Assembly: GCF_000006765.1 (NCBI RefSeq)
Contig: NC_002516.2
Reading direction: 5' to 3' (one strand)
From: Pseudomonas aeruginosa PAO1
GTDB lineage: Bacteria; Pseudomonadota; Gammaproteobacteria; Pseudomonadales; Pseudomonadaceae
DNA: 64,000 nt
The notes beneath the pieces were generated by a model, which worked only from the letters and a program-made list of their open reading frames with translations, did no database searches and was not told where the DNA came from. Positions within the stretch are counted from its first letter, which is position 1; every line of letters starts with the position of its first letter. Below are positions 8,787-55,356 of this stretch, one piece after another. The translations under genes and the position numbers were made by a program.

Positions 8787-9710
8787 TTATTCGACGACTG
8801 TCGCTGGCTGCTCGCCGCCCTCTCCGAGATGACGGACGAACCAGTCTGCCGCAGCCTGGCTGGTGGCGTCGAAATGCTCGATGTACGGCGTGAAATGGCC
8901 GCCGGCGAGCATCAGCAGCCGCTTGGGCGGCAACGCCCGCTGGTAGGCCTCCAGGCAAAGGTCCGTGGGCGTAAGCAGGTCCCGGTCGGCGACGATCATC
9001 AGCAGCGGCGTGGGGCTGATCCGCCCAATGTGAATGCCCGGCTCGTTCTCTCGCGCCAGCTCGGCGCTACGCAGGGTCACCCGGTTGCACCAGTTCGGTG
9101 CCAGCGCCGCGCTGTCGGTGAAGAACCGGTGGGCGTCCGCGCCGGCCATCGCGCAAGGCTCGTCGGGACTCGCGGCGACCGCCGGCAACAGCGCCGGCGG
9201 CAAGCCCTCGAAGCGCCGCTGGCGGTCCGCGTCGAAGCTTGCCAGCAATGCCGGCAACTGCTCGGCGCGGGTCCGGCGCAACGCCGAGGCATGGCCGCTG
9301 ACGGTCGGCACCTGCGCCACCACGCATTTCACCCGCCGATCCAGTGCGGCCACTTCCAGCACATGTCCGCCGCTGTAGCTGGTTCCCCAGATGCCGATGC
9401 GGCTGGCGTCGACCCGGGCCTGGGCGCCCAACCAGGTGATCGCGTCGCGATAGCCGCGACGCTGCATCACCGGATCGATTTCCTGGCGCGGCTCGCCGTC
9501 GCTGTCGCCGAAGTTCGGATGATCGTAGAGGAGCACGACGAAGCCGGCGGCGGCGAATACCTCGGCGTAACGGTCCAGGTACTGCTCCTTCACCCCGGAA
9601 AAACCGTGCGTCATGACGATCGCCGGCCGCTCGGCACGCGCCTCCGGCAAATACAGCCAGCCGCGCAGGGCGACACCCTCGGAGCGGAATTCCACGTTCA
9701 GTCGTTGCAT
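8787..9710 (-). CDS. Alpha/beta hydrolase
   Basis: ATG at 9710 (MQRLNVEFRSEG); HGFSGVKE and nucleophile elbow GTSYSGG; C-terminal GGHF. Confidence 0.85.
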   Translation of the reverse strand: MQRLNVEFRSEGVALRGWLYLPEARAERPAIVMTHGFSGVKEQYLDRYAEVFAAAGFVVLLYDHPNFGDSDGEPRQEIDPVMQRRGYRDAITWLGAQARVDASRIGIWGTSYSGGHVLEVAALDRRVKCVVAQVPTVSGHASALRRTRAEQLPALLASFDADRQRRFEGLPPALLPAVAASPDEPCAMAGADAHRFFTDSAALAPNWCNRVTLRSAELARENEPGIHIGRISPTPLLMIVADRDLLTPTDLCLEAYQRALPPKRLLMLAGGHFTPYIEHFDATSQAAADWFVRHLGEGGEQPATVVE

Positions 9711-9793
9711 GCTTGCCTCCCGGGGCGGTCGTCTGGAAACGGGCCCAGCATAGGAATCCTGCCGCGTCGGCGCCGTCCGCCAACGGACGAAGG

Positions 9794-10606
9794 CTACGCC
9801 GAATCGGACAAGGCGAAGTAGCGGCTCGGCGTGCTCCCGGTCAGGCGTCGGAACATGGCACTGAATGCGCTGGGCGTCTGGTAGCCGAGATCCACGGCGA
9901 TCCGCGCCACCGCTTCGCCAGCCGCCAGGCGTGGCAGGGCGGCGGCCAGGCGCACCTGGTGGCGCCAATGGACGAAGGTCACTCCCAGTTCGGAGAGAAA
10001 CAGCCGTGCCAGGGTCCGCGAGGACGCCCCCACGTAGCGCGCCCACTCCTCCAGCCCGCGAGGGTCGGCCGGGTTCTCCAGCAGCGCCTGGCAGACTCTT
10101 CCCAGGCGTCGGTCCGCGGGGTCGGGCAAGGCCAGGGGCTGTTCCCGCGACCACTCCAGTTCGTCCAGCAGCACCGCCATCAACCGCCCCTCCCGGCCGC
10201 GCTCGTCGTACAACAACGGCAGGCCGGCGGCGCGCACGATCAACTCGCGCAACAATGGGCTGACCATCACTCCGCGCGGCACCCGGGGGAATTCCGGCGG
10301 GCAGGACTGCGGCCGGACATAGACGGTGTGCAAGCGGACCTCGCCGCGCGCCAGCATCGCGTGCGCCATCCCCGCCGGCATCCATACCGCGCGCTGCGGC
10401 GGGACCAGCCATAGCGTGCGACCGACATGCAGTTCGATCACGCCCGACAGGGCATGGATCAACTGCGCCCGCTCGTGCCGGTGCTCGGCGACCACGAAAC
10501 CCGCCGGGAAGGTCTTGGCCATGACCCCGAGCGGCCGGCCGACTCGCTGGTAATCGCGTGGGTCGGTACTCCGGGCGGGATCCGCGACTGGTTTGCTGGC
10601 GGGCAC
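9794..10606 (-). CDS. AraC-family transcriptional regulator (cupin + HTH)
   Basis: GTG start after AGGAG; HRHERAQL cupin motif; C-terminal LGYQTPSAFSAMFRR. Confidence 0.88.
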   Translation of the reverse strand: MPASKPVADPARSTDPRDYQRVGRPLGVMAKTFPAGFVVAEHRHERAQLIHALSGVIELHVGRTLWLVPPQRAVWMPAGMAHAMLARGEVRLHTVYVRPQSCPPEFPRVPRGVMVSPLLRELIVRAAGLPLLYDERGREGRLMAVLLDELEWSREQPLALPDPADRRLGRVCQALLENPADPRGLEEWARYVGASSRTLARLFLSELGVTFVHWRHQVRLAAALPRLAAGEAVARIAVDLGYQTPSAFSAMFRRLTGSTPSRYFALSDSA

Positions 10607-10891
10607 GGTGCGACTCCTGCGGAACGAAACGTTCATTATAGGGACGCGGCATGGCCGCGGGTTCCCATGCGTACACAGTCGTGCCAGACACGCCGCAGTT
10701 GTGCGACCATGTGCGGCAACGGCCGGGAAGCACCGCCAACCCGGCTCCGGCGCTGTAGAACCTCGGTTGCCATCCTCGGCATGGAACGACCCCCGCCGCA
10801 ACGACTAAGCTGTCGCTGCCTGCGTCACCGCCCCGGCGGCGACCGTCAGTCCTCGGGACGAATCGTGCTCGGAACAATCGCTTACCGCTAA

Positions 10892-12855
<1,964 letters not shown>

Positions 12856-12866
12856 AGTGCACGACC

Positions 12867-13235
12867 ATGGACAGCCACAAACCGACACAACCCCCGGAGC
12901 AGTTGCTCGATGACCTGGAGTCGATCCACGACCTGCTCTACGAACGGAACGAGCCGCCCTTGCTGACCGAATCCTTCGAGCCGGACAACATTCCCCTGCT
13001 CTCCGACGTCGTCTCCCCCGGTACCGCCCCGCGCGCGCCAGAGCCGCAGACCGCGGCAGCCACCACGGCAGGGCTGGCGCCCGCCGAACAGGAGCGCCTG
13101 GACGACGAGTTGCGAGCGTCCGCCGAACTGATCCTGCAGGAAGTCATCGACGACTTCGCCCCGCAGATCGAAGCCGAACTGCGCCGCCGCCTGCAAGCCC
13201 GCCTGGGTCGCCTGCTCGGCCAACGCAACGGCTGA
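12867..13235 (+). CDS. Hypothetical acidic protein between holC and valS
   Basis: 122-aa ORF with host codon usage; IPLLSDVV and LILQEVIDDFAPQIE motifs. Confidence 0.7.
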   Translation: MDSHKPTQPPEQLLDDLESIHDLLYERNEPPLLTESFEPDNIPLLSDVVSPGTAPRAPEPQTAAATTAGLAPAEQERLDDELRASAELILQEVIDDFAPQIEAELRRRLQARLGRLLGQRNG

Positions 13236-13355
13236 TCCGGACGCGGCGGGCGCCCGCCGCGGCCCGCGGCCTTACCCCCGGGCCGCCATCCCCGCTATAC
13301 TCCCGGACTTTCTTCGCATTTTCCCCAGCCATATTCAGCTTTGGTCCCCTTTCGC

Positions 13356-16208
<2,853 letters not shown>

Positions 16209-48789: not shown

Positions 48790-48877
48790 AGCGCGAGTAC
48801 CGAAGGGTGCCTGAGCGACGTACGGGACTAGGCCGGGCTGGACATGCCCGGCCACCCGGACGCGCGGCGCAGCTATG
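48790..48877 (+). pseudogene. 5' fragment of molybdopterin-oxidoreductase-like gene interrupted by the transposon
   Basis: Reads ...LSDVRD*AGLDMPGHPDARRSY and continues in frame into 55214 onward once the element is removed. Confidence 0.5.
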
Positions 48878-49061
48878 TGTAGCGGCTTGCAATCGAAAAC
48901 CGTCGGGCTCGCAATCAGCGCGATTTTGGGCTCAGATTATCTGTGACTGACGGTGGGGGCGGGCTCACATTAATTGCGAGCGAGCTTGCAATCCATGCGG
49001 TGGGCTTGCAGTCCATTACCGCGGGCTCACGCTCTTTGCGACTGACGCTCATACCGGTAAT
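48878..49061 (+). repeat. Left terminal inverted repeat (184 bp)
   Basis: Reverse complement of 55024-55207 with 10 mismatches by manual alignment. Confidence 0.95.
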
Positions 49062-49282
49062 ACGCCGATCCCGATGAAGCAGATGACCTTTGCCGACGCC
49101 GAGTACGCCGGCAAGCGCAAGCAGAGGCGCGTCTGTAATGGGGGAAGGCTGCTGCGAGGTGCTCGCGGCGGCTAAAAACACAGAAATGAGCGGGTGATCG
49201 GATCGTTTTTAATCGATTCTCCGCTTTCAAATTCGCCGGGGGCTGAAGTCGGCCAGAAAGACATGGCTACTTCAGACCATCC
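49062..49282 (+). mobile_element. Internally deleted IS5-family remnant
   Basis: ATG 49074 gives MKQMTFADAEYAGKRKQ (IS5-type transposase N-terminus) fused to E-A-R-L-stop; ends ACTTCAGACCATCC followed by CTAA. Confidence 0.7.
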
Positions 49283-49358
49283 CTAAGGGGGCTGAGCCTA
49301 TATTGTTTGTAGTCCATGCAAGGGATTGCAAGCCAACTCAGCCCCAAGGTTTCCACCT

Positions 49359-49697
49359 TTATTTTCTGGAGGCAATTGTTACAATAAAAGCATCATGCCC
49401 AAGAGAAGCATCTTCCTCTGTACTCTCTTTCGCTCTAGCGTTATTATTATTGACAACATCAGGCACTTTTACTGGATTGACAAGCCCTTCAAATATGGCA
49501 TCAAGTCTTGCCTCGAACCTCCCTACATCCTTATGCCAGATGAATCCCTCAATTTTTGAAATTGCCAACCCTTTTTTAGTTGCCAAAGATACGACTTCCA
49601 GAGTTGCCTTCGTAGTTAGCCACATCTTCCCATTGCCTTCTTTTGAAAAAAAATCTAGGCCATTGTCAACTATTTCGACAGAGTTAGGATTGATCAT
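49359..49697 (-). CDS. Pyocin immunity protein (ImmE5-like)
   Basis: 112 aa; ATG overlaps the pyocin stop (TAATG); L..KA.LEV...A.KKGL and AFIVT patterns as in colicin E5 immunity protein. Confidence 0.85.
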   Translation of the reverse strand: MINPNSVEIVDNGLDFFSKEGNGKMWLTTKATLEVVSLATKKGLAISKIEGFIWHKDVGRFEARLDAIFEGLVNPVKVPDVVNNNNARAKESTEEDASLGHDAFIVTIASRK

Positions 49698-51991
49698 TAC
49701 TTATTTCTCCAGATGATTCGCCCGTCAACCGCCCATGCGGAATCGTTCCGATCTGCAATTTGAATAATTTCACCTGTCCTATCGTTCACAACTATATATC
49801 CATTAGGAGGACTTCCATATACTGTTGCAGAGTCATTCCGCCCCAGCCCATCTATCGTCTTATTAGGCCGACGCTTATCTGAAGAACTACCTGTTGCACC
49901 TTTTCCGATAACATCTCTAACTTCAACCTCAGTCCACCCTCTAATTGGAATTTGCTCTCTGATCTTATCATCAATAACAACATCATGAGGGTTATGATTG
50001 AACATTATATAGATTGGCTTAACCCCCGAGCCCACCGGGAAGATCACGATCAGATCGTCCAGATCTAACGGCACTCCCGGATAGGACTCCGGCTCGGCCT
50101 GTACTGGGGTGATCGTTGCTCCCTCATACACCGGAACCGGCTGCGGTACGACCGGAGTGGTGCTTGAGGGGTTCTGGCTTCCTGGAGGGGTGGCAGGGGT
50201 CCAGGTCAAGATCAGCGGTGGTGTATTCGGCACGGTGGACTTTGCGGGAACCGTCACCTCATACCGGCCCGTCGCAGCATTGAGGGTCGCGGCGCGAACA
50301 GGCACGCCCTTGGGGACAGTTGCACCGTTGGTCAACATCGCGGCAATCTGCGATTTACCACTCGGGCTCTCTTGTGCAGCACTCGTGAGTCGTACCGGCA
50401 TATCAACCGTGCCACCTGCCTTGGCGACGCTTTGCAAATCAGCCGTGCCAGGAAGCCCCAGAGCGGACGCCTCCAGTGCCAATGCATTGCGAACGCCGGC
50501 AGGAACCTTGTCACTGTCTTTACCAGCCTGGTCGGAATACAGCGACAGCACCGCGAAGGTGGCAACGTATGCGCCGGGTCCACTACCAGCAATCTGAACC
50601 AGGCGATTGACAGCATTCGTTAGGGAAGCCGCCAGGCGAGCCGTCTCCACTGCCGCACTACCAAACCCGGCCACCGAAACCAGCGGCGTAGAGGTAGCCG
50701 GCATCGCCAAGGTGTTCGCAGCCTGGATGATCTGACCTGGTACTACATCGGCTGTTTTTTGCAAATCGTTGGTCGCCGCACGCTGTGCCTCGGCTACCGC
50801 TGCCGAAACCTCCTTGGCTTTGGCCTGCAGCTCTGCTTCGGTCTGCTGGGCATAGGTGTTCACCTTGGCATAGGTGCTTTCAGTGAATTGTCGAAGGGTT
50901 GCTTGTGCAGCTTGCGAAGCCGCCTTGGTGGGGCTTGCCTTGACCTGGGCGGTTAGCCTGTTGACCTCGGTTTCGACCTCGGCGGCCGCATTGGCAGCAA
51001 ACTGAGCCAGCGCTTGTTTTCGTGCTGTCGAAAACGCCGTGGCTTCGTTGACGATCTGCTTGACTTGGGTGTTGAAAGCCGTGACCTGGGCTTCTCCACT
51101 GGCCTGTGCTGCCAAGGCAATCTGATTCCGAAATGCCGCGCTGATCAGGTTCTGGCTGGACGAAATCTGGCTGTTGGCTTGTTGCTGGGCTTGCGCTGTC
51201 TTGACCTGCACCGCCTGGGTTGCCGAGGCGACTGCACCACTGACCTGGGTGGAAACCTGAGACAGACTAGCATCCACTGCTTTCACACGTTGCTGGACCT
51301 TGGTGGCGGTCGGAGTGGTGATCGCGTTGAAGTCGGCACCGAGCTGTTGAGTGACCTGCTGGGCTTGCGCCTCCATTGACCGGGCTTTACTCTCCAGTTC
51401 TTGAGACGTTTGTTTCAAGATAGCGATTTGCGCCTTATAGATATCAGCGCTGTACGCTTTGGCCAGCTCACTCATATGTCGATCAAGGAACTCTCCATAG
51501 AACTTTCGACTGGCTAGCAACTGATTCTGGTACATCGCCTCTGACTTCTGAGGAAAGTCTGAAGCCGTATAAAGATTGGCCGGGCGATCCTCAATGGCCT
51601 TTAGCGATTTTGCTTTGGCATCCATGAGTGCATCAACGATACTCTTTTCATCGCGGATGTCATTGGCACTGACCGCTTTAACTGGCAACCCCGCTTCACT
51701 CTTGAGTTCATCTACCTCCTTCAAGGTTTTATTCTTCAGGTTTTTCTTGAGTTCTGAATTGGACTTATCAAGAGTATCTCTTAGCCTCCTGTACTCTTGC
51801 ATTCCAGGGCCAACATACGGGCTTGGTCCTGGCGGGACAAATGGTGGAGTACCGTAGCTTGAGCGACCTGGAATGTACTGGATTATGTCTAGCCCACTAG
51901 CCTGTACATGCGTAATAACCATCGACCCAGGCTCGTAACCATTATCATTTCCTCTGGTCACGACAAGTGGTGGCGCACTATTATTTGTCAT
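49697..51991 (-). CDS. S-type pyocin with colicin E5-like tRNase domain (pyocin S4 type), 764 aa
   Basis: N-terminus close to pyocin S2 domain I (YEPGSMVITHVQ...SSYGTPPFVPPGPSPYVG); Pyocin_S domain ending DDLIVIFP..SG.KPIYIMF; C-terminal IDDKIREQIPIRGWT...RNDSATVYGS...VVNDRTGE matches colicin E5 RNase. Confidence 0.92.
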   Translation of the reverse strand: MTNNSAPPLVVTRGNDNGYEPGSMVITHVQASGLDIIQYIPGRSSYGTPPFVPPGPSPYVGPGMQEYRRLRDTLDKSNSELKKNLKNKTLKEVDELKSEAGLPVKAVSANDIRDEKSIVDALMDAKAKSLKAIEDRPANLYTASDFPQKSEAMYQNQLLASRKFYGEFLDRHMSELAKAYSADIYKAQIAILKQTSQELESKARSMEAQAQQVTQQLGADFNAITTPTATKVQQRVKAVDASLSQVSTQVSGAVASATQAVQVKTAQAQQQANSQISSSQNLISAAFRNQIALAAQASGEAQVTAFNTQVKQIVNEATAFSTARKQALAQFAANAAAEVETEVNRLTAQVKASPTKAASQAAQATLRQFTESTYAKVNTYAQQTEAELQAKAKEVSAAVAEAQRAATNDLQKTADVVPGQIIQAANTLAMPATSTPLVSVAGFGSAAVETARLAASLTNAVNRLVQIAGSGPGAYVATFAVLSLYSDQAGKDSDKVPAGVRNALALEASALGLPGTADLQSVAKAGGTVDMPVRLTSAAQESPSGKSQIAAMLTNGATVPKGVPVRAATLNAATGRYEVTVPAKSTVPNTPPLILTWTPATPPGSQNPSSTTPVVPQPVPVYEGATITPVQAEPESYPGVPLDLDDLIVIFPVGSGVKPIYIMFNHNPHDVVIDDKIREQIPIRGWTEVEVRDVIGKGATGSSSDKRRPNKTIDGLGRNDSATVYGSPPNGYIVVNDRTGEIIQIADRNDSAWAVDGRIIWRNK

Positions 51992-52069
51992 GAATGGCTT
52001 TCCTATCGAAAGAGTTGAACCAATATATTTACAGAACCTTCTTGAGCGATGCAGTAGTGGGTAGAAAAT

Positions 52070-52110
52070 GCACGGCAATAGGCCGGCCAGATGCGGCAAT
52101 CAACTGCAAT
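52070..52110 (-). promoter_or_regulatory. P-box (PrtN-responsive) repeat array
   Basis: Minus strand ATTGCAGTTG ATTGCCGCAT CTGGCCGGCCT ATTGCCGTGC: 10-11-bp units fitting ATTGnnGTnn, about 80-120 bp upstream of the pyocin ATG. Confidence 0.65.
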
Positions 52111-52179
52111 ATCTCAGTTTGAAGCTCTACGATGGTTGCACTCCATTCTTCCCTTTGCGGTATCGCTCCGTTCGTGGAA

Positions 52180-52209
52180 GCGTCCATCAGACGACCGTTT
52201 TCTGGACGC
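52180..52209. promoter_or_regulatory. Candidate res subsite
   Basis: GCGTCCA-N16-TGGACGC, 30 bp, upstream of the resolvase. Confidence 0.45.
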
Positions 52210-52320
52210 CAGCCTCGTTCCCCTTGGCCGCCCCCAGAAGCCGCGTACTTTTAGTCCAGTAACGATTTCTCGCTTTCAAAATTCACCTATGCTGCCTTTC
52301 GCGCATTTCTGAACGAAATC

Positions 52321-52896
52321 ATGCTGATTGGGTACGTGCGCATTTCCACCGACGATCAACTACTGGACCTGCAACGCGATGCGATGGCCAAGGCGGGTTG
52401 CGAGCGAGTGTTCGAAGACACTGCCAGCGGCGCCAAGGCCGATCGAATCGGCCTGGCCGCGCTTCTCGCCAATCTAAGGCGGGGCGACACGGTGGTGGTC
52501 TGGCGGCTGGACCGGCTTGGCCGCTCGATCAAGGACCTGATCTACCTGGTCGAGCAATTGGAGGATGCCGGCGTGGGTCTGAAGAGCCTCCAGGAGAACA
52601 TCGACACCACATCCACCGGAGGGCGTTTGGTTTTCCACCTCTTTGCCGCGCTAGCCGAGTTCGAGCGCAACCTGATCCGTGAATGCACCCATGCGAGACT
52701 ATCTGCAGCACGTGCTCGCGGTCGGCTGGGTGGCCGCAAGAAACGCCTGGATCCCGCCAAGCGCAAAGTCGCCCTGAAGCTCTATCACGAGCGCCAATAC
52801 ACCGTGGTGGAGATCTGTCGGATGATGGGAATCGGCCGCTCGACGCTCTACAACTACATCACCGAGGCAGAACGGAATGCCCACCAGCAGGCGTAA
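52321..52896 (+). CDS. Serine recombinase (resolvase/invertase)
   Basis: MLIGYVRIST catalytic Ser, VVWRLDRLGRS, AEFERNLI and C-terminal HTH. Confidence 0.92.
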   Translation: MLIGYVRISTDDQLLDLQRDAMAKAGCERVFEDTASGAKADRIGLAALLANLRRGDTVVVWRLDRLGRSIKDLIYLVEQLEDAGVGLKSLQENIDTTSTGGRLVFHLFAALAEFERNLIRECTHARLSAARARGRLGGRKKRLDPAKRKVALKLYHERQYTVVEICRMMGIGRSTLYNYITEAERNAHQQA

Positions 52897-54462
52897 GGCC
52901 ATTCCCGTCGATTCGCTGCTGCAACGGAGGCAGCGCCTGGATCACTTGCCGAAGAAGAGCCCGGAGCGGGCCCGTCAGGTGGCCCTTGTAGCTGAACTGT
53001 ACGGCGTTTCCTCCAGTACGGTCTATCGCGCCCTGGTCCTTCTGCACAGGCCTAGGCAGCCCACCGCTCCGACCAGGGCAAGCCCCGCGTCCTGCCCCAG
53101 GCGGAACTGGAGCGCTACTGCGAACTGATTGCGGCGTTGAAGCTGCGCACCACCAACAAGCAGGGGCGGCATCTATCTACACACCACGCCATTGAGCTGC
53201 TGGAAGAGTACGGTGTAGAAACTGACCGGGGCCTCATTGTTGCCCCAAGAGGCGTACTCCACAGACCCACCGTCAACCGATATCTATCACATTGGCGATT
53301 AAGGCCTGCTCAACTGTCCCGGGAGCCAGGCGCAACTCGGTTCCAGGCTGAGCACAGCAACGATTGTTGGCAGTTCGACATGTCGCCGTCGGACCTCAAG
53401 CATATTGAGCATCCGCGGTGGATCGATCCCGCCAAGGGCGAACCCACCCTGATGCTGTTCAGCGTGGTGGATGACCGCAGCGGTGTGGCCTACCAGGAAT
53501 ACCACTGCGTTTATGGTGAGGATGCGGAGACGGCACTTCGTTTTCTGTTCAACTCGATGGCGCCGAAAGCGGACCCGAGTTTTCCCTTTCAGGGCCGGCC
53601 CAAGCTGATCTATCTGGACAACGGTCCGGTGGCCAAGCGTCGCGTTTTCCAGAGCGTCATGCGGGCGCTGGGCATCGAGTGGCAGACACACATCCCTGCC
53701 AGCAAGGATGGAACGCGCACCACGGCCCGCTCGAAAGGCAAGGTCGAACGTCCTTTCCGCACAGTGAAGGAAGCCCACGAGACCCTGTACCACTTCCACA
53801 AGCCGGAAACCGAAGCCCAGGCCAACGAGTGGCTGTTGCGCTACCTAGTGCGCACCTACAACCAGCAGACACATCGTGCCGAACCCCTTTCACGGATCGA
53901 GGACTGGATCACCCATGTGCCAACAGAGGGGATCCGTGAAATGTGCTCATGGGATCAGTTCTGCCGCTTTGCTCGGGAGCCCGAGCGGCGCAAAGTCGGG
54001 CCTGATGCCCGAATCACCACCGACGGTACCGCGTACGAGCTTGAGCCAGAGATGGCCGGCGACTACGTCGTGCTGCTCTGGGGGCTGTTCGACGATGAGC
54101 TGCATGCCGAGTTCGATGGCGAGCGGTTCGGTCCTCACTACCCGGTGTCCGGCCCCATTCCGCAGCACCGCTACCGGGCTTTCAAGCGCAGCAAGGCAGA
54201 CGAGCGCTCAGCTCGTATCCGATCTCTCGCGGACCAGTTGGGGCTGCCGATCGCGGCGCTTTCCGGGGAAGATGTACGACTAGAGCCCGGTTCTGCTGAC
54301 TCGACGCTCCCCATCCAGCCCTTCGTTTTCGAGCCCCAGGAATCCCGCATTGCGGCCAAGCTGGCTATCGCCGAGGAACTGGCAATGCCGCTGGCCAAGC
54401 TTTCAATGGATGACCGCGCCTTCATCGACCAGGTGCTGAGCGAGACCCTGGCTACGGACTGA
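52877..54462 (+). pseudogene. DDE transposase (Mu/rve-type), frameshifted and 3'-truncated
   Basis: Frameshift near 53051-53062; WQFD, VVDDRSG, YLDNG and KGKVER catalytic-core motifs. Confidence 0.85.
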
Positions 54463-55023
54463 GCCCCCCTTGAATCAGGCGGGCTATTTCGAAACCACCC
54501 ATCATCAGCAGTTGATGAGAGACATCCGCGGCGCCATCTTCGAAGGCCGGCTGATCGCCCTGTGTGGTGTGATCGGCAGCGGCAAGACGGTGATGCTGCG
54601 TCGTTTGTAGCACCTGCTGGAAGAGGAAAAGAAAGTCACGGAGTCCAGATCGATGGCCATCGAGAAGCACAACATCAAGCTGGCCACCTTCATCGCCGCG
54701 CTCTTCTATGACCTTTCCACCCAGAAACAGGTACGCATTCCCACCCAGATCGAAAAACGGGATCGCGAACTGTACGAACTGGTAAAGAAGAGCAAGCGCC
54801 CCGTGGCCCTGCTCGTTGATGAAACCCATGATCTCAATGGTCATACCTTGACCGGTCTGAAGCGACTGCTCGAACTGGCCGAAGACGACAGCGGCCGGCG
54901 ACGCTTGTCCATTGTCCTGGCTGGCCATCCCAAGCTGTGTAACGATCTGCGCCGCCCCACGATGGAAGAAATTGGTTACCGCACCGACATTTTCGAGTTG
55001 CAGGAAAAGATGCAAAGTGCCGG
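54453..55023 (+). pseudogene. Transposon AAA+ ATPase (ExeA/TniB-like), disrupted
   Basis: Walker A GVIGSGKT, in-frame TAG at 54608-54610, Walker B LLVDET; 5' end lost; cut off at the right IR. Confidence 0.82.
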
Positions 55024-55207
55024 ATTACCGGTATGAGCGTCAGTCGCAAAGAGCCTGAGCCCGCGGTAACGGATTGCAAGCCCGGCGCACGGATTGCAAG
55101 CTCGCTCGCAATTAATGTGAGCCCGCCTCCACCGTCAGTCGCAGATAATCTGAGCCCAAAATCGCGCTGATTGCGAGCCCGCCGGTTTTCGACTGCAAGC
55201 CGCTACA
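55024..55207 (-). repeat. Right terminal inverted repeat (184 bp)
   Basis: Ends ...GCAAGCCGCTACA; matches the left IR. Confidence 0.95.
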
Positions 55208-55335
55208 GCTATGTGATCGCGCGCAGCTCCAGCGACGGTTATGCCGTGATGTTTTCCTGGGGTGAGCTGTACAGCAGCGAGACCCTGCTGGCCTACCAGA
55301 AGAGCGGCCTCGCCCTGGCCGCTGGCGAAGGCCCG
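55208..55335 (+). pseudogene. 3' fragment of the interrupted molybdopterin-oxidoreductase-like gene
   Basis: YVIARSSSDGYAVMFSWGELY...LLAYQKSG.ALAAGEGPL. Confidence 0.55.
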
Positions 55336-55356
55336 CTGGAGGCGCCCCGAGTCGCC

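Follow-up and report, generated by a model that had tools for sequence, protein, structure and literature searches.

The pyocin S4 operon of Pseudomonas aeruginosa PAO1 as cargo of a decayed, precisely bounded transposon with Tn552-like organisation

In 1993, Sano and Kageyama reportedly placed the operon of pyocin AP41 in a 'transposon-like structure', which is said to be the earliest such report for an S-type pyocin operon, and the pyocin S8 transposon of Pseudomonas aeruginosa is said to have been named Tn6350 by Turano et al. in 2017. A more distant point of comparison is Tn552 of Staphylococcus aureus, which was examined as carried by pMW2 and pN315. On pMW2 this transposon is 6546 bp long, has imperfect inverted repeats (IRs) of ~115 nucleotides (nt) with TGTCAC...GTGACA tips, and is flanked by a 7-bp duplication, TAATTGT. 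The present analysis concerns a stretch of 64,000 nt from P. aeruginosa PAO1 (assembly GCF_000006765.1, contig NC_002516.2), referred to below as the window, whose coordinates are used throughout unless another locus is named. Within the window, positions 48878-55207 are read as a decayed, non-autonomous member of a proteobacterial transposon family with Tn552-like organisation, carrying the pyocin S4 operon with its own P-box; the probability of this reading is put at roughly 0.87.

A search of the literature collection available found no description of the S4 locus as a bounded transposon, and nothing that ties S4, PA3867-PA3869 or Tn552 to a bounded pyocin transposon. A preliminary description of the same DNA, made from the sequence alone, had likewise pointed to no account of this locus as a bounded transposon. 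That statement stands for the S4 locus but not for the general idea, in view of Tn6350, the S8 transposon of 2017. Because the concept of a pyocin transposon has already been published, the advance reported here is modest and incremental, with the target rule of the family and the mosaic structure of the S4 element as modest extras.

Boundaries and empty site of the pyocin S4 element

Terminal repeats were searched for between 47.5 and 56.5 kb of the window. The repeat finder returned a single dominant inverted pair, with arms of 187 nt (48878-49064 and 55021-55207), 94% complementarity and a spacing of 5956 nt, and pairwise alignment of the two arms gave 10 mismatches with similarity dropping off sharply at both sides. 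The outer tips of the element read TGTAGCGG...CCGCTACA, i.e. TGT...ACA, and the hexamer GCTATG abuts each of them, so that the element between the duplications measures 6330 bp. The inverted copies ending in TGT...ACA that had been proposed from the sequence are therefore borne out, with the mismatch count as originally given and arms of 187 nt, as is the presence of GCTATG at both ends, which was confirmed by direct reading of the flanks. The 25-nt terminal sequence has two sites in the window, both at the tips, where zero are expected from shuffled sequence. Within each arm, a ~22-nt sub-repeat (TCGCAATTAATGTGAGCCCGCC-like) recurs several times, as would be expected for ends with multiple transposase-binding sites.

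Alleles of the site were retrieved from contigs encoding an identical moaA1 protein, a route that returned both occupied and empty alleles, and from additional look-ups with PA3865 and the resolvase. The neighbours of the element are the nar genes, moaA1 and PA3865, and the insertion lies in the moaA1-PA3865 intergenic region. Seven P. aeruginosa genomes were found to be empty at this position, with a moaA1-PA3865 spacing of 637 bp. With the flanks anchored, the empty site reads ...CGCGCGGCGCA-GCTAGG-TGATCGCACGCAG..., a single hexamer exactly at the predicted junction, and occupied alleles have GCTATG, 6330 bp and GCTATG at the same point; the full insert was present in three genomes from the moaA1 look-up and in six more obtained via PA3865. 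Overall, the look-ups by flanking genes set 10 occupied loci against the seven empty genomes. A single hexamer at this exact point in element-free genomes indicates that the 6330 bp represent one insertion with a 6-bp duplication. The central TA of GCTATG, which is typical of the family described below, provides independent support for a true duplication. Empty-site alleles had been suggested as a check in the preliminary description, and the seven genomes supply them, the hexamer at their junction being one single-nucleotide polymorphism (SNP) away from GCTATG. A few linked SNPs also occur in the adjoining flank, so that the sampled empty haplotypes are not the recipient haplotype; the insertion is precise all the same.

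These alleles also bear on a different explanation, in which the 187-nt arms are independent solo ends, or relics resembling miniature inverted-repeat transposable elements (MITEs), that lie around the pyocin locus and were never part of one mobile unit. Unpaired ends of the family are indeed known elsewhere, both at individual loci (L029, L033, L073 and L088) and on many plasmids with odd match counts. However, in the window a single hexamer duplication brackets the entire 6330-bp unit, the empty alleles lack both arms together with the interior, and the arms are 94% identical and inverted, which makes solo ends hardly tenable here.

When the flanks are joined (48807-48877 and 55214-55350), an open frame that resembles a coding remnant runs across the empty site (...YVIARSSSDGYAVMFSWGELYSS...). 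No gene is called there in the empty-site genomes, and the frame may be a relic gene of the moaA1-PA3865 spacer or a GC-rich artefact.

Cargo, res site and decay of the transposition genes

The features of the element are compiled in Table 1. The interval assigned by Elfarash et al. to the pyocin S4 immunity gene (PAO1 4327359-4327697; PMC3496971) equals in length the immunity gene of the window, and this match, together with the neighbouring nar genes, moaA1 and PA3865, identifies the locus as the PAO1-type pyocin S4 (PA3866) region. The cassette has the hallmarks of pyocin S4, namely a Pyocin_S domain, a Colicin_E5 nuclease domain and an ImmE5 gene directly downstream. Pyocin genes annotated as truncated in several strains were considered and dismissed as gene-calling differences: L102 (559 aa), L106 (234 aa) and L105 (the full 764 aa) are all identical to the window in sequence, so that the differing lengths are an artefact of annotation. 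The repeats upstream of the pyocin gene were named after the P-box consensus reportedly described by Matsui et al. (1993). At 49068, just inside the left repeat and beside the IS5 remnant, a 16-bp indel polymorphism was observed, with TCCCGTTGCCCGAGTT present in L015, L016, L104, L107 and L111.

Table 1. Features of the pyocin S4 element and its target-site duplications, in window coordinates.
Feature	Position	Strand	Evidence
Target-site duplication, left copy, GCTATG	48872..48877	.	Single hexamer (GCTAGG) at same point in empty alleles
Left terminal inverted repeat, 187 nt, begins TGTAGCGG, ~22-nt sub-repeats	48878..49064	+	Repeat search; family end profile, E 4e-49
IS5-family insertion sequence remnant, two pieces, including start of transposase open reading frame (ORF)	49069..49285	.	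78-88% identity to plasmid IS5-family transposase elements
Pyocin S4 immunity gene, 112 aa, ImmE5 family	49359..49697	-	Domain match; length equal to published PAO1 interval
Pyocin S4 (PA3866), 764 aa, S-type translocation and colicin E5-type tRNase domains	49697..51991	-	Pyocin_S, 3e-36; Colicin_E5, 3.6e-37
P-box-like promoter repeats (ATTGcaGTtg ATTGccGC ... ATTGccGTgc ATTT), upstream of pyocin gene	52060..52112	-	Sequence reading
Putative res site, GTCCA-N16-TGGAC dyad and further GTCCA/TGGAC half-sites, upstream of resolvase gene	52175..52320	+	Alignment of 10 family members
Serine resolvase (PA3867), 191 aa, intact	52321..52896	+	98% identical to S8-element resolvase; 49% to Tn552 BinL
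DDE transposase pseudogene, residues 1-52 and 53-522 in different frames, last 23 codons lost	52901..54453	+	tblastn; intact relatives 545 aa
AAA (AAA_22/ExeA-like) ATPase pseudogene	54467..55036	+	Intact relatives 323-325 aa
Right terminal inverted repeat, 187 nt, finishes CCGCTACA, overlaps 3' end of ATPase reading frame	55021..55207	-	Repeat search; end profile
Target-site duplication, right copy, GCTATG	55208..55213	.	Sequence; occupied versus empty alleles

The gene content listed in the preliminary description was recovered in full (IS5 remnant, ImmE5, a pyocin with Pyocin_S and Colicin_E5 domains, Resolvase, rve-type DDE transposase and AAA_22 ATPase), and to it is now added the pseudogene status of the transposase and the ATPase, which that account did not contain. 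Upstream of the resolvase gene, ~150 bp are kept across the family, including the GTCCA-N16-TGGAC dyad and the half-sites, and these would form the res site expected at this position.

The lesions were defined by reference to an intact relative on plasmid pBJ86, in which resolvase, transposase and ATPase are 191, 545 and 325 aa long, respectively. Comparison with this S8-type relative attributes the transposase frameshift to a 1-nt deletion near 53054. An 85-bp deletion in the window reaches from the 3' end of the transposase gene into the ATPase gene, which has lost its first 13 codons to it. The ATPase gene furthermore has an in-frame stop at 54608-54610 and, after 54994, an internal deletion of ~380 bp with only the last ~11 codons remaining beyond it. 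Since transposase and ATPase are both broken, the S4 copy is no longer able to move by itself. With neither gene intact, the window copy is not autonomous, and its lesions are common to 19 other genomes. The S4 element is old, fixed in place and non-autonomous, and it is not an active route of spread.

The PA3867 resolvase is intact in nearly all copies although its neighbours have decayed. A preprint of 2025 (10.1101/2025.04.03.646983) reports altered sensitivity to two phages in transposon mutants of PA3867, which may reflect either a function that has been retained or polar effects on the pyocin operon.

The element was at the same site in 53 of 53 S4-bearing contigs (26 found via PA3865, 27 via the resolvase). 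The PA3865 identical-protein route led to no empty allele, all 26 of its contigs being occupied; moaA1 is the more conserved protein. In the 19 other S4-bearing genomes compared, the elements are 6325-6347 bp long, share site and lesions with the window, and differ from it by 0-49 point differences. Identical lesions and an identical site in all compared copies suggest that the present distribution results from descent and from homologous recombination of the flanks, and not from ongoing transposition. The proposal that the bacteriocin arrived as a transposon passenger, and that this would be a route for horizontal pyocin spread, thus survives in part: past transposition is documented, but a working route is not what this defective copy at a single site offers.

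It might be argued that the element is still mobile in trans, serving as an active vehicle of S4 by means of intact family members elsewhere in the cell, given that both ends, res and the resolvase are intact and that intact relatives exist on P. aeruginosa plasmids and islands. Against this stand the single site occupied in all 53 contigs and the ends of the intact P. aeruginosa relatives examined, which are just ~58% identical to the S4 ends, and mobility in trans is accordingly judged very improbable.

In the history proposed here, the element entered the moaA1-PA3865 spacer by one insertion at a hexamer with central TA, of which 6 bp were duplicated, as the empty alleles record. The transposition would have been catalysed by the DDE transposase, with the ATPase assisting in target capture, and cointegrates, if any were formed, would have been resolved by the resolvase at res. 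The cargo would be expressed from its own PrtN-dependent P-box, judging from the families involved. Decay is placed later in this history and can be read from the comparison with intact relatives: the frameshift and the C-terminal deletion of the transposase, and the loss of the start, the stop and the loss of ~380 bp in the ATPase.

The pyocin S8 sibling and mosaic structure

The same ends at other loci or with other cargo had been named as something to look for, and a sibling with 95-99% identical res-transposase-ATPase genes was found to carry pyocin S8. The pBJ86 relative adjoins a 772-aa protein with Pyocin_S and HNH DNase domains and an 85-aa Colicin_Pyocin immunity protein, both equal in size to the published S8 proteins, and the DNase domain matches PDB entry 6W0V, 'Pyocin S8', with 276 bits, well above S2 and AP41. 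Complete chromosomal S8 copies are 7403 bp long, read TGTAGCGACC...GGTCGCTACA and are flanked by the duplication CTTAGT. Their order is ATPase, transposase, resolvase, res, P-box, S8, immunity gene and two small ORFs. This S8 element is the structure reported as Tn6350 by Turano et al. in 2017.

Comparison of the S4 element with Tn6350 revealed a common architecture (end, immunity gene, pyocin gene and P-box, res, resolvase, DDE transposase, AAA ATPase, end), with an S-type pyocin and immunity operon placed between one end and res in both. In both, the tips read TGT...ACA and the 6 bp that were duplicated have TA at their centre (CTTAGT in Tn6350, GCTATG in the S4 element), and the block at 52350-54990 is 95-99% identical at the nucleotide level, with the exception of a patch of ~70% identity at 53158-53400. 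The cargo differs, however: Tn6350 has an HNH DNase pyocin with a Colicin_Pyocin immunity protein and two small ORFs, whereas the S4 element has an E5-type tRNase with ImmE5, and the two pyocins share 33% identity that is confined to the translocation domain. The transposition genes are intact in Tn6350 (545 aa and 325 aa) and broken in the S4 copy, and Tn6350 occurs in an island or megaplasmid context whereas the S4 element lies in the core chromosome. The ends, furthermore, are 57-58% identical between the two, the comparison being with the S8 right end.

Higher identity to the S4 ends was observed in a P. putida plasmid member (74-76%), the genes of which are just 77% identical. Nucleotide homology between the S4 and S8 elements begins at 52094, inside the P-box-like repeats, and the cargo to the left of this point is unrelated. 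A near-identical res-to-ATPase block with divergent ends indicates that the S4 element is a mosaic of two lineages, both of its ends coming from another lineage of the family than the block, with breakpoints at the ~380-bp ATPase deletion on the right and in the P-box.

The mosaic leaves room for a different order of events, in which a cargo-less element inserted at GCTATG first and the S4 cassette was gained later in situ, through recombination or cassette exchange between the left end and res, in which case the pyocin would not have come as a passenger. Such capture would account for two lineages within one element and for the sharp S4/S8 junction in the P-box, and it would fit the IS5 remnant beside the left end as well as the commonness of cargo-less family members. 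It is nevertheless considered unlikely, given that no cargo-free intermediate occurs among the 20 occupied alleles compared and that cargo regularly occupies this position in family members with their own duplications elsewhere, including the S8 sibling. Insertion of the element with its S4 operon already aboard is the likelier reading.

The left end of the S8 transposon on the megaplasmid pBJ86 was not found within 36 kb. A ~27-kb Tn21-like transposon with mercury resistance and a multi-resistance integron lies directly beside the S8 cargo there (L020, 7500-35000), and its insertion on the cargo side explains the missing end. In two P. aeruginosa chromosomes (L114 and L119, 2057-8732), a Tn402-like element is located within the res region of the S8 transposon. 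This insert contains TniA, TniB, TniQ, a resolvase, an acetyltransferase cassette and an integron integrase, and is accompanied by a 226-bp deletion that removes the 5' end of the S8 transposon's resolvase gene. Elements of the Tn402-like family are known to target res sites, and the insertions in the S8 element fit this habit.

Pyocin AP41 is 89% identical to S8 overall, and its locus was examined in one genome (L121; P0046, i.e. 4UHP). The AP41 operon of that genome (8844-11646) was without family ends, transposition genes or convincing flanking repeats. It sits between a TatD-like gene and a LysR regulator, and what it shares with the S8 element is the pyocin gene, ~150 bp upstream and ~100 bp downstream only. 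The idea that AP41 might be a third pyocin carried by this backbone is therefore not supported in the one genome examined, and the absence of family ends and genes there suggests that the case of 1993 may be unrelated.

The wider family and its relation to known transposons

An alignment of the transposase was searched against one genome per bacterial species, which yielded 202 relatives, and 80 of the loci were fetched. Hosts include Pseudomonas, Burkholderiales, Enterobacterales, Acidithiobacillus, Geobacterales and others. Using a profile of the ~170-nt end, paired inverted ends were detected in about 45 of the 80 fetched loci. The smallest members, of 3.66-3.7 kb (L074, L060 and L065), consist of res, resolvase, transposase and ATPase only, and in larger members the stretch from the left end to res holds cargo, for example a hybrid histidine kinase, a WD40 protein, an AAA_15 ATPase, an MFS transporter, a CDF transporter, a multicopper oxidase or MerA. 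No pyocin cargo in other species was seen among the 80 species-representative loci.

Perfect 6-bp duplications flank 16 independent elements besides that of the window (L024, L028, L029, L032, L040, L047, L051, L060, L063, L070, L072, L074, L078, L083, L097 and L112). Positions 3-4 are TA in each of the 17 hexamers, often as part of CTAG, and their symmetrised consensus is S-C-T-A-G-S; the central TA also occurred in 35 of 36 unmatched flanks. Two further checks suggested by the preliminary description were thereby answered in the affirmative, as related ends with other cargo do occur elsewhere, in the 16 further elements, and apparently autonomous intact copies exist, in the form of the ~3.7-kb members.

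Several side observations concern individual family members. In L029 (9128-14071), the left end pairs by its duplication with a second, outer right end, and extra or unpaired family ends were also present in L033, L073 and L088, which points to insertions in nested or tandem arrangement and to ends left behind as solo relics. A member just upstream of spvR is found on ~94-kb Salmonella virulence plasmids (L122, S. Typhimurium, 9001-13600) and comprises an end and a carbonic anhydrase as cargo, together with a recombinase, an 'IS481 family transposase' and an ExeA-family ATPase. Matches to the end sequence were present in 427 Salmonella plasmids. A search of the transposase profile against the PDB returned weak matches to retroviral-integrase cores alone, with MuA and TnsB absent from the matches, and an AlphaFold2 model of the transposase (17-sequence alignment; mean pLDDT 60, pTM 0.27) was too poor for a fold search.

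With regard to Tn552, the assignment proposed in the preliminary description is upheld by the architecture, the TGT...ACA ends, the short target duplication, the resolvase and a distant homology to p480; homology of the ATPase to p271 was not detected. Tn552 has the order end, cargo (blaZ-blaR1-blaI), res, BinL, p480, p271, end, with its cargo in the same position as that of the S4 element, and both elements have long imperfect TGT...ACA IRs, with sub-repeats in the S4 element, and a short duplication. BinL is 49% identical to the family resolvase. The p480 protein of pN315 matches the family transposase by BLASTP with 24% identity over 197 aa (E 5e-9), and hhalign aligns the family profile with p480 at a probability of 94% (E 1e-7; 324 columns, 27% identity), from the helix-turn-helix (HTH) to beyond the DDE core. 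In contrast, the duplication of Tn552 is 7 bp and that of the family strictly 6 bp with central TA, the IRs are ~115 and 187 nt, respectively, and p480 passes the Pfam models rve and Mu-transpos_C (62.7 bits), of which the family transposase falls short. The match of the family to Mu-transpos_C_2 is faint (E 0.084); the hhalign alignment extends into that part of p480, and residues 371-413 of the transposase are strand-rich in the low-confidence AlphaFold model (pLDDT 60). The ATPase of the family, encoded after the transposase gene, is an AAA_22/ExeA-like protein of 323-325 aa. 'Tn552-like' is therefore a fair term for the organisation and for the nearest characterised transposase, with the understanding that the family is distinct from, and very distant to, Tn552.

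Among NCBIfam models, IS481 is the best for the family transposase, and many members bear the PGAP label 'IS481 family transposase', but the score of 79.4 bits compares with a model cutoff of 224. This model was rejected as a classifier: p480 of Tn552 scores higher on it (104 bits) than the family does, which renders the PGAP label uninformative. IS481 elements are single-gene elements of ~1 kb that lack an ATPase, a resolvase, a res site and long ends with multiple sites. Their 6-bp duplication and consensus target NCTAGN (PMC3053399) do resemble the central-TA preference of the family. For Tn5053/Tn402 membership, no TniQ-like gene was present in the S4 element and the comparison of the ATPase with TniB was not significant; Tn402 TniA aligned with the family profile by hhalign over 71 columns at a probability of 41%. 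Tn5053/Tn402 elements make duplications of 5 bp, compared with the 6 bp of the S4 element.

Several points weigh against reading the S4 locus as a decayed, cargo-carrying family member. The sampled empty alleles have GCTAGG and not GCTATG, with SNPs in the nearby flank, and the exact recipient haplotype lies outside the sample. The S4 element was found at a single locus, so that mobility of the cargo as a unit is deduced from the duplication and the empty site. With ends 58% identical to those of the S8 element, the resident transposase may never have matched the S4 ends. The Pfam rve and Mu-transpos_C scores of the transposase are below threshold, and comparison of the ATPase with p271 of pMW2 by hhalign was not significant (probability 1.5%, E 0.035), the two showing no detectable relationship beyond the P-loop.

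The S4 element provides an origin for PA3866, a well-studied gene of the reference strain, and explains the annotation of PA3867-PA3869 as an 'invertase' and hypothetical proteins, these being the resolvase and the wrecks of the transposase and ATPase. The accessory nature of the S4 locus, with its clean presence/absence polymorphism, is likewise accounted for. A tRNase (S4) and a DNase (S8) on almost the same transposition module support the view that bacteriocin diversity in P. aeruginosa has been assembled partly on transposon backbones. As a tentative and rather doubtful extension, an unnamed, very widespread Tn552-related family (with res, a DDE transposase, an ExeA-like ATPase, ~170-nt ends with multiple sites and a 6-bp target in which the central TA is obligatory) might, in P. 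aeruginosa, serve as a platform for swapping S-type pyocin modules at a fixed res/PrtN P-box junction, with backbones and ends reshuffled between lineages and an intact PA3867 kept after decay. Annotation of mobile elements may profit from the strict 6-bp target NNTANN, from the minimal element of ~3.7 kb and the conserved res, and from the presence of members on many plasmids. In comparison with the systems described before, pyocin-carrying transposons of the same backbone were already known, and what is new is the S4 locus as a defective, precisely bounded member of this family.

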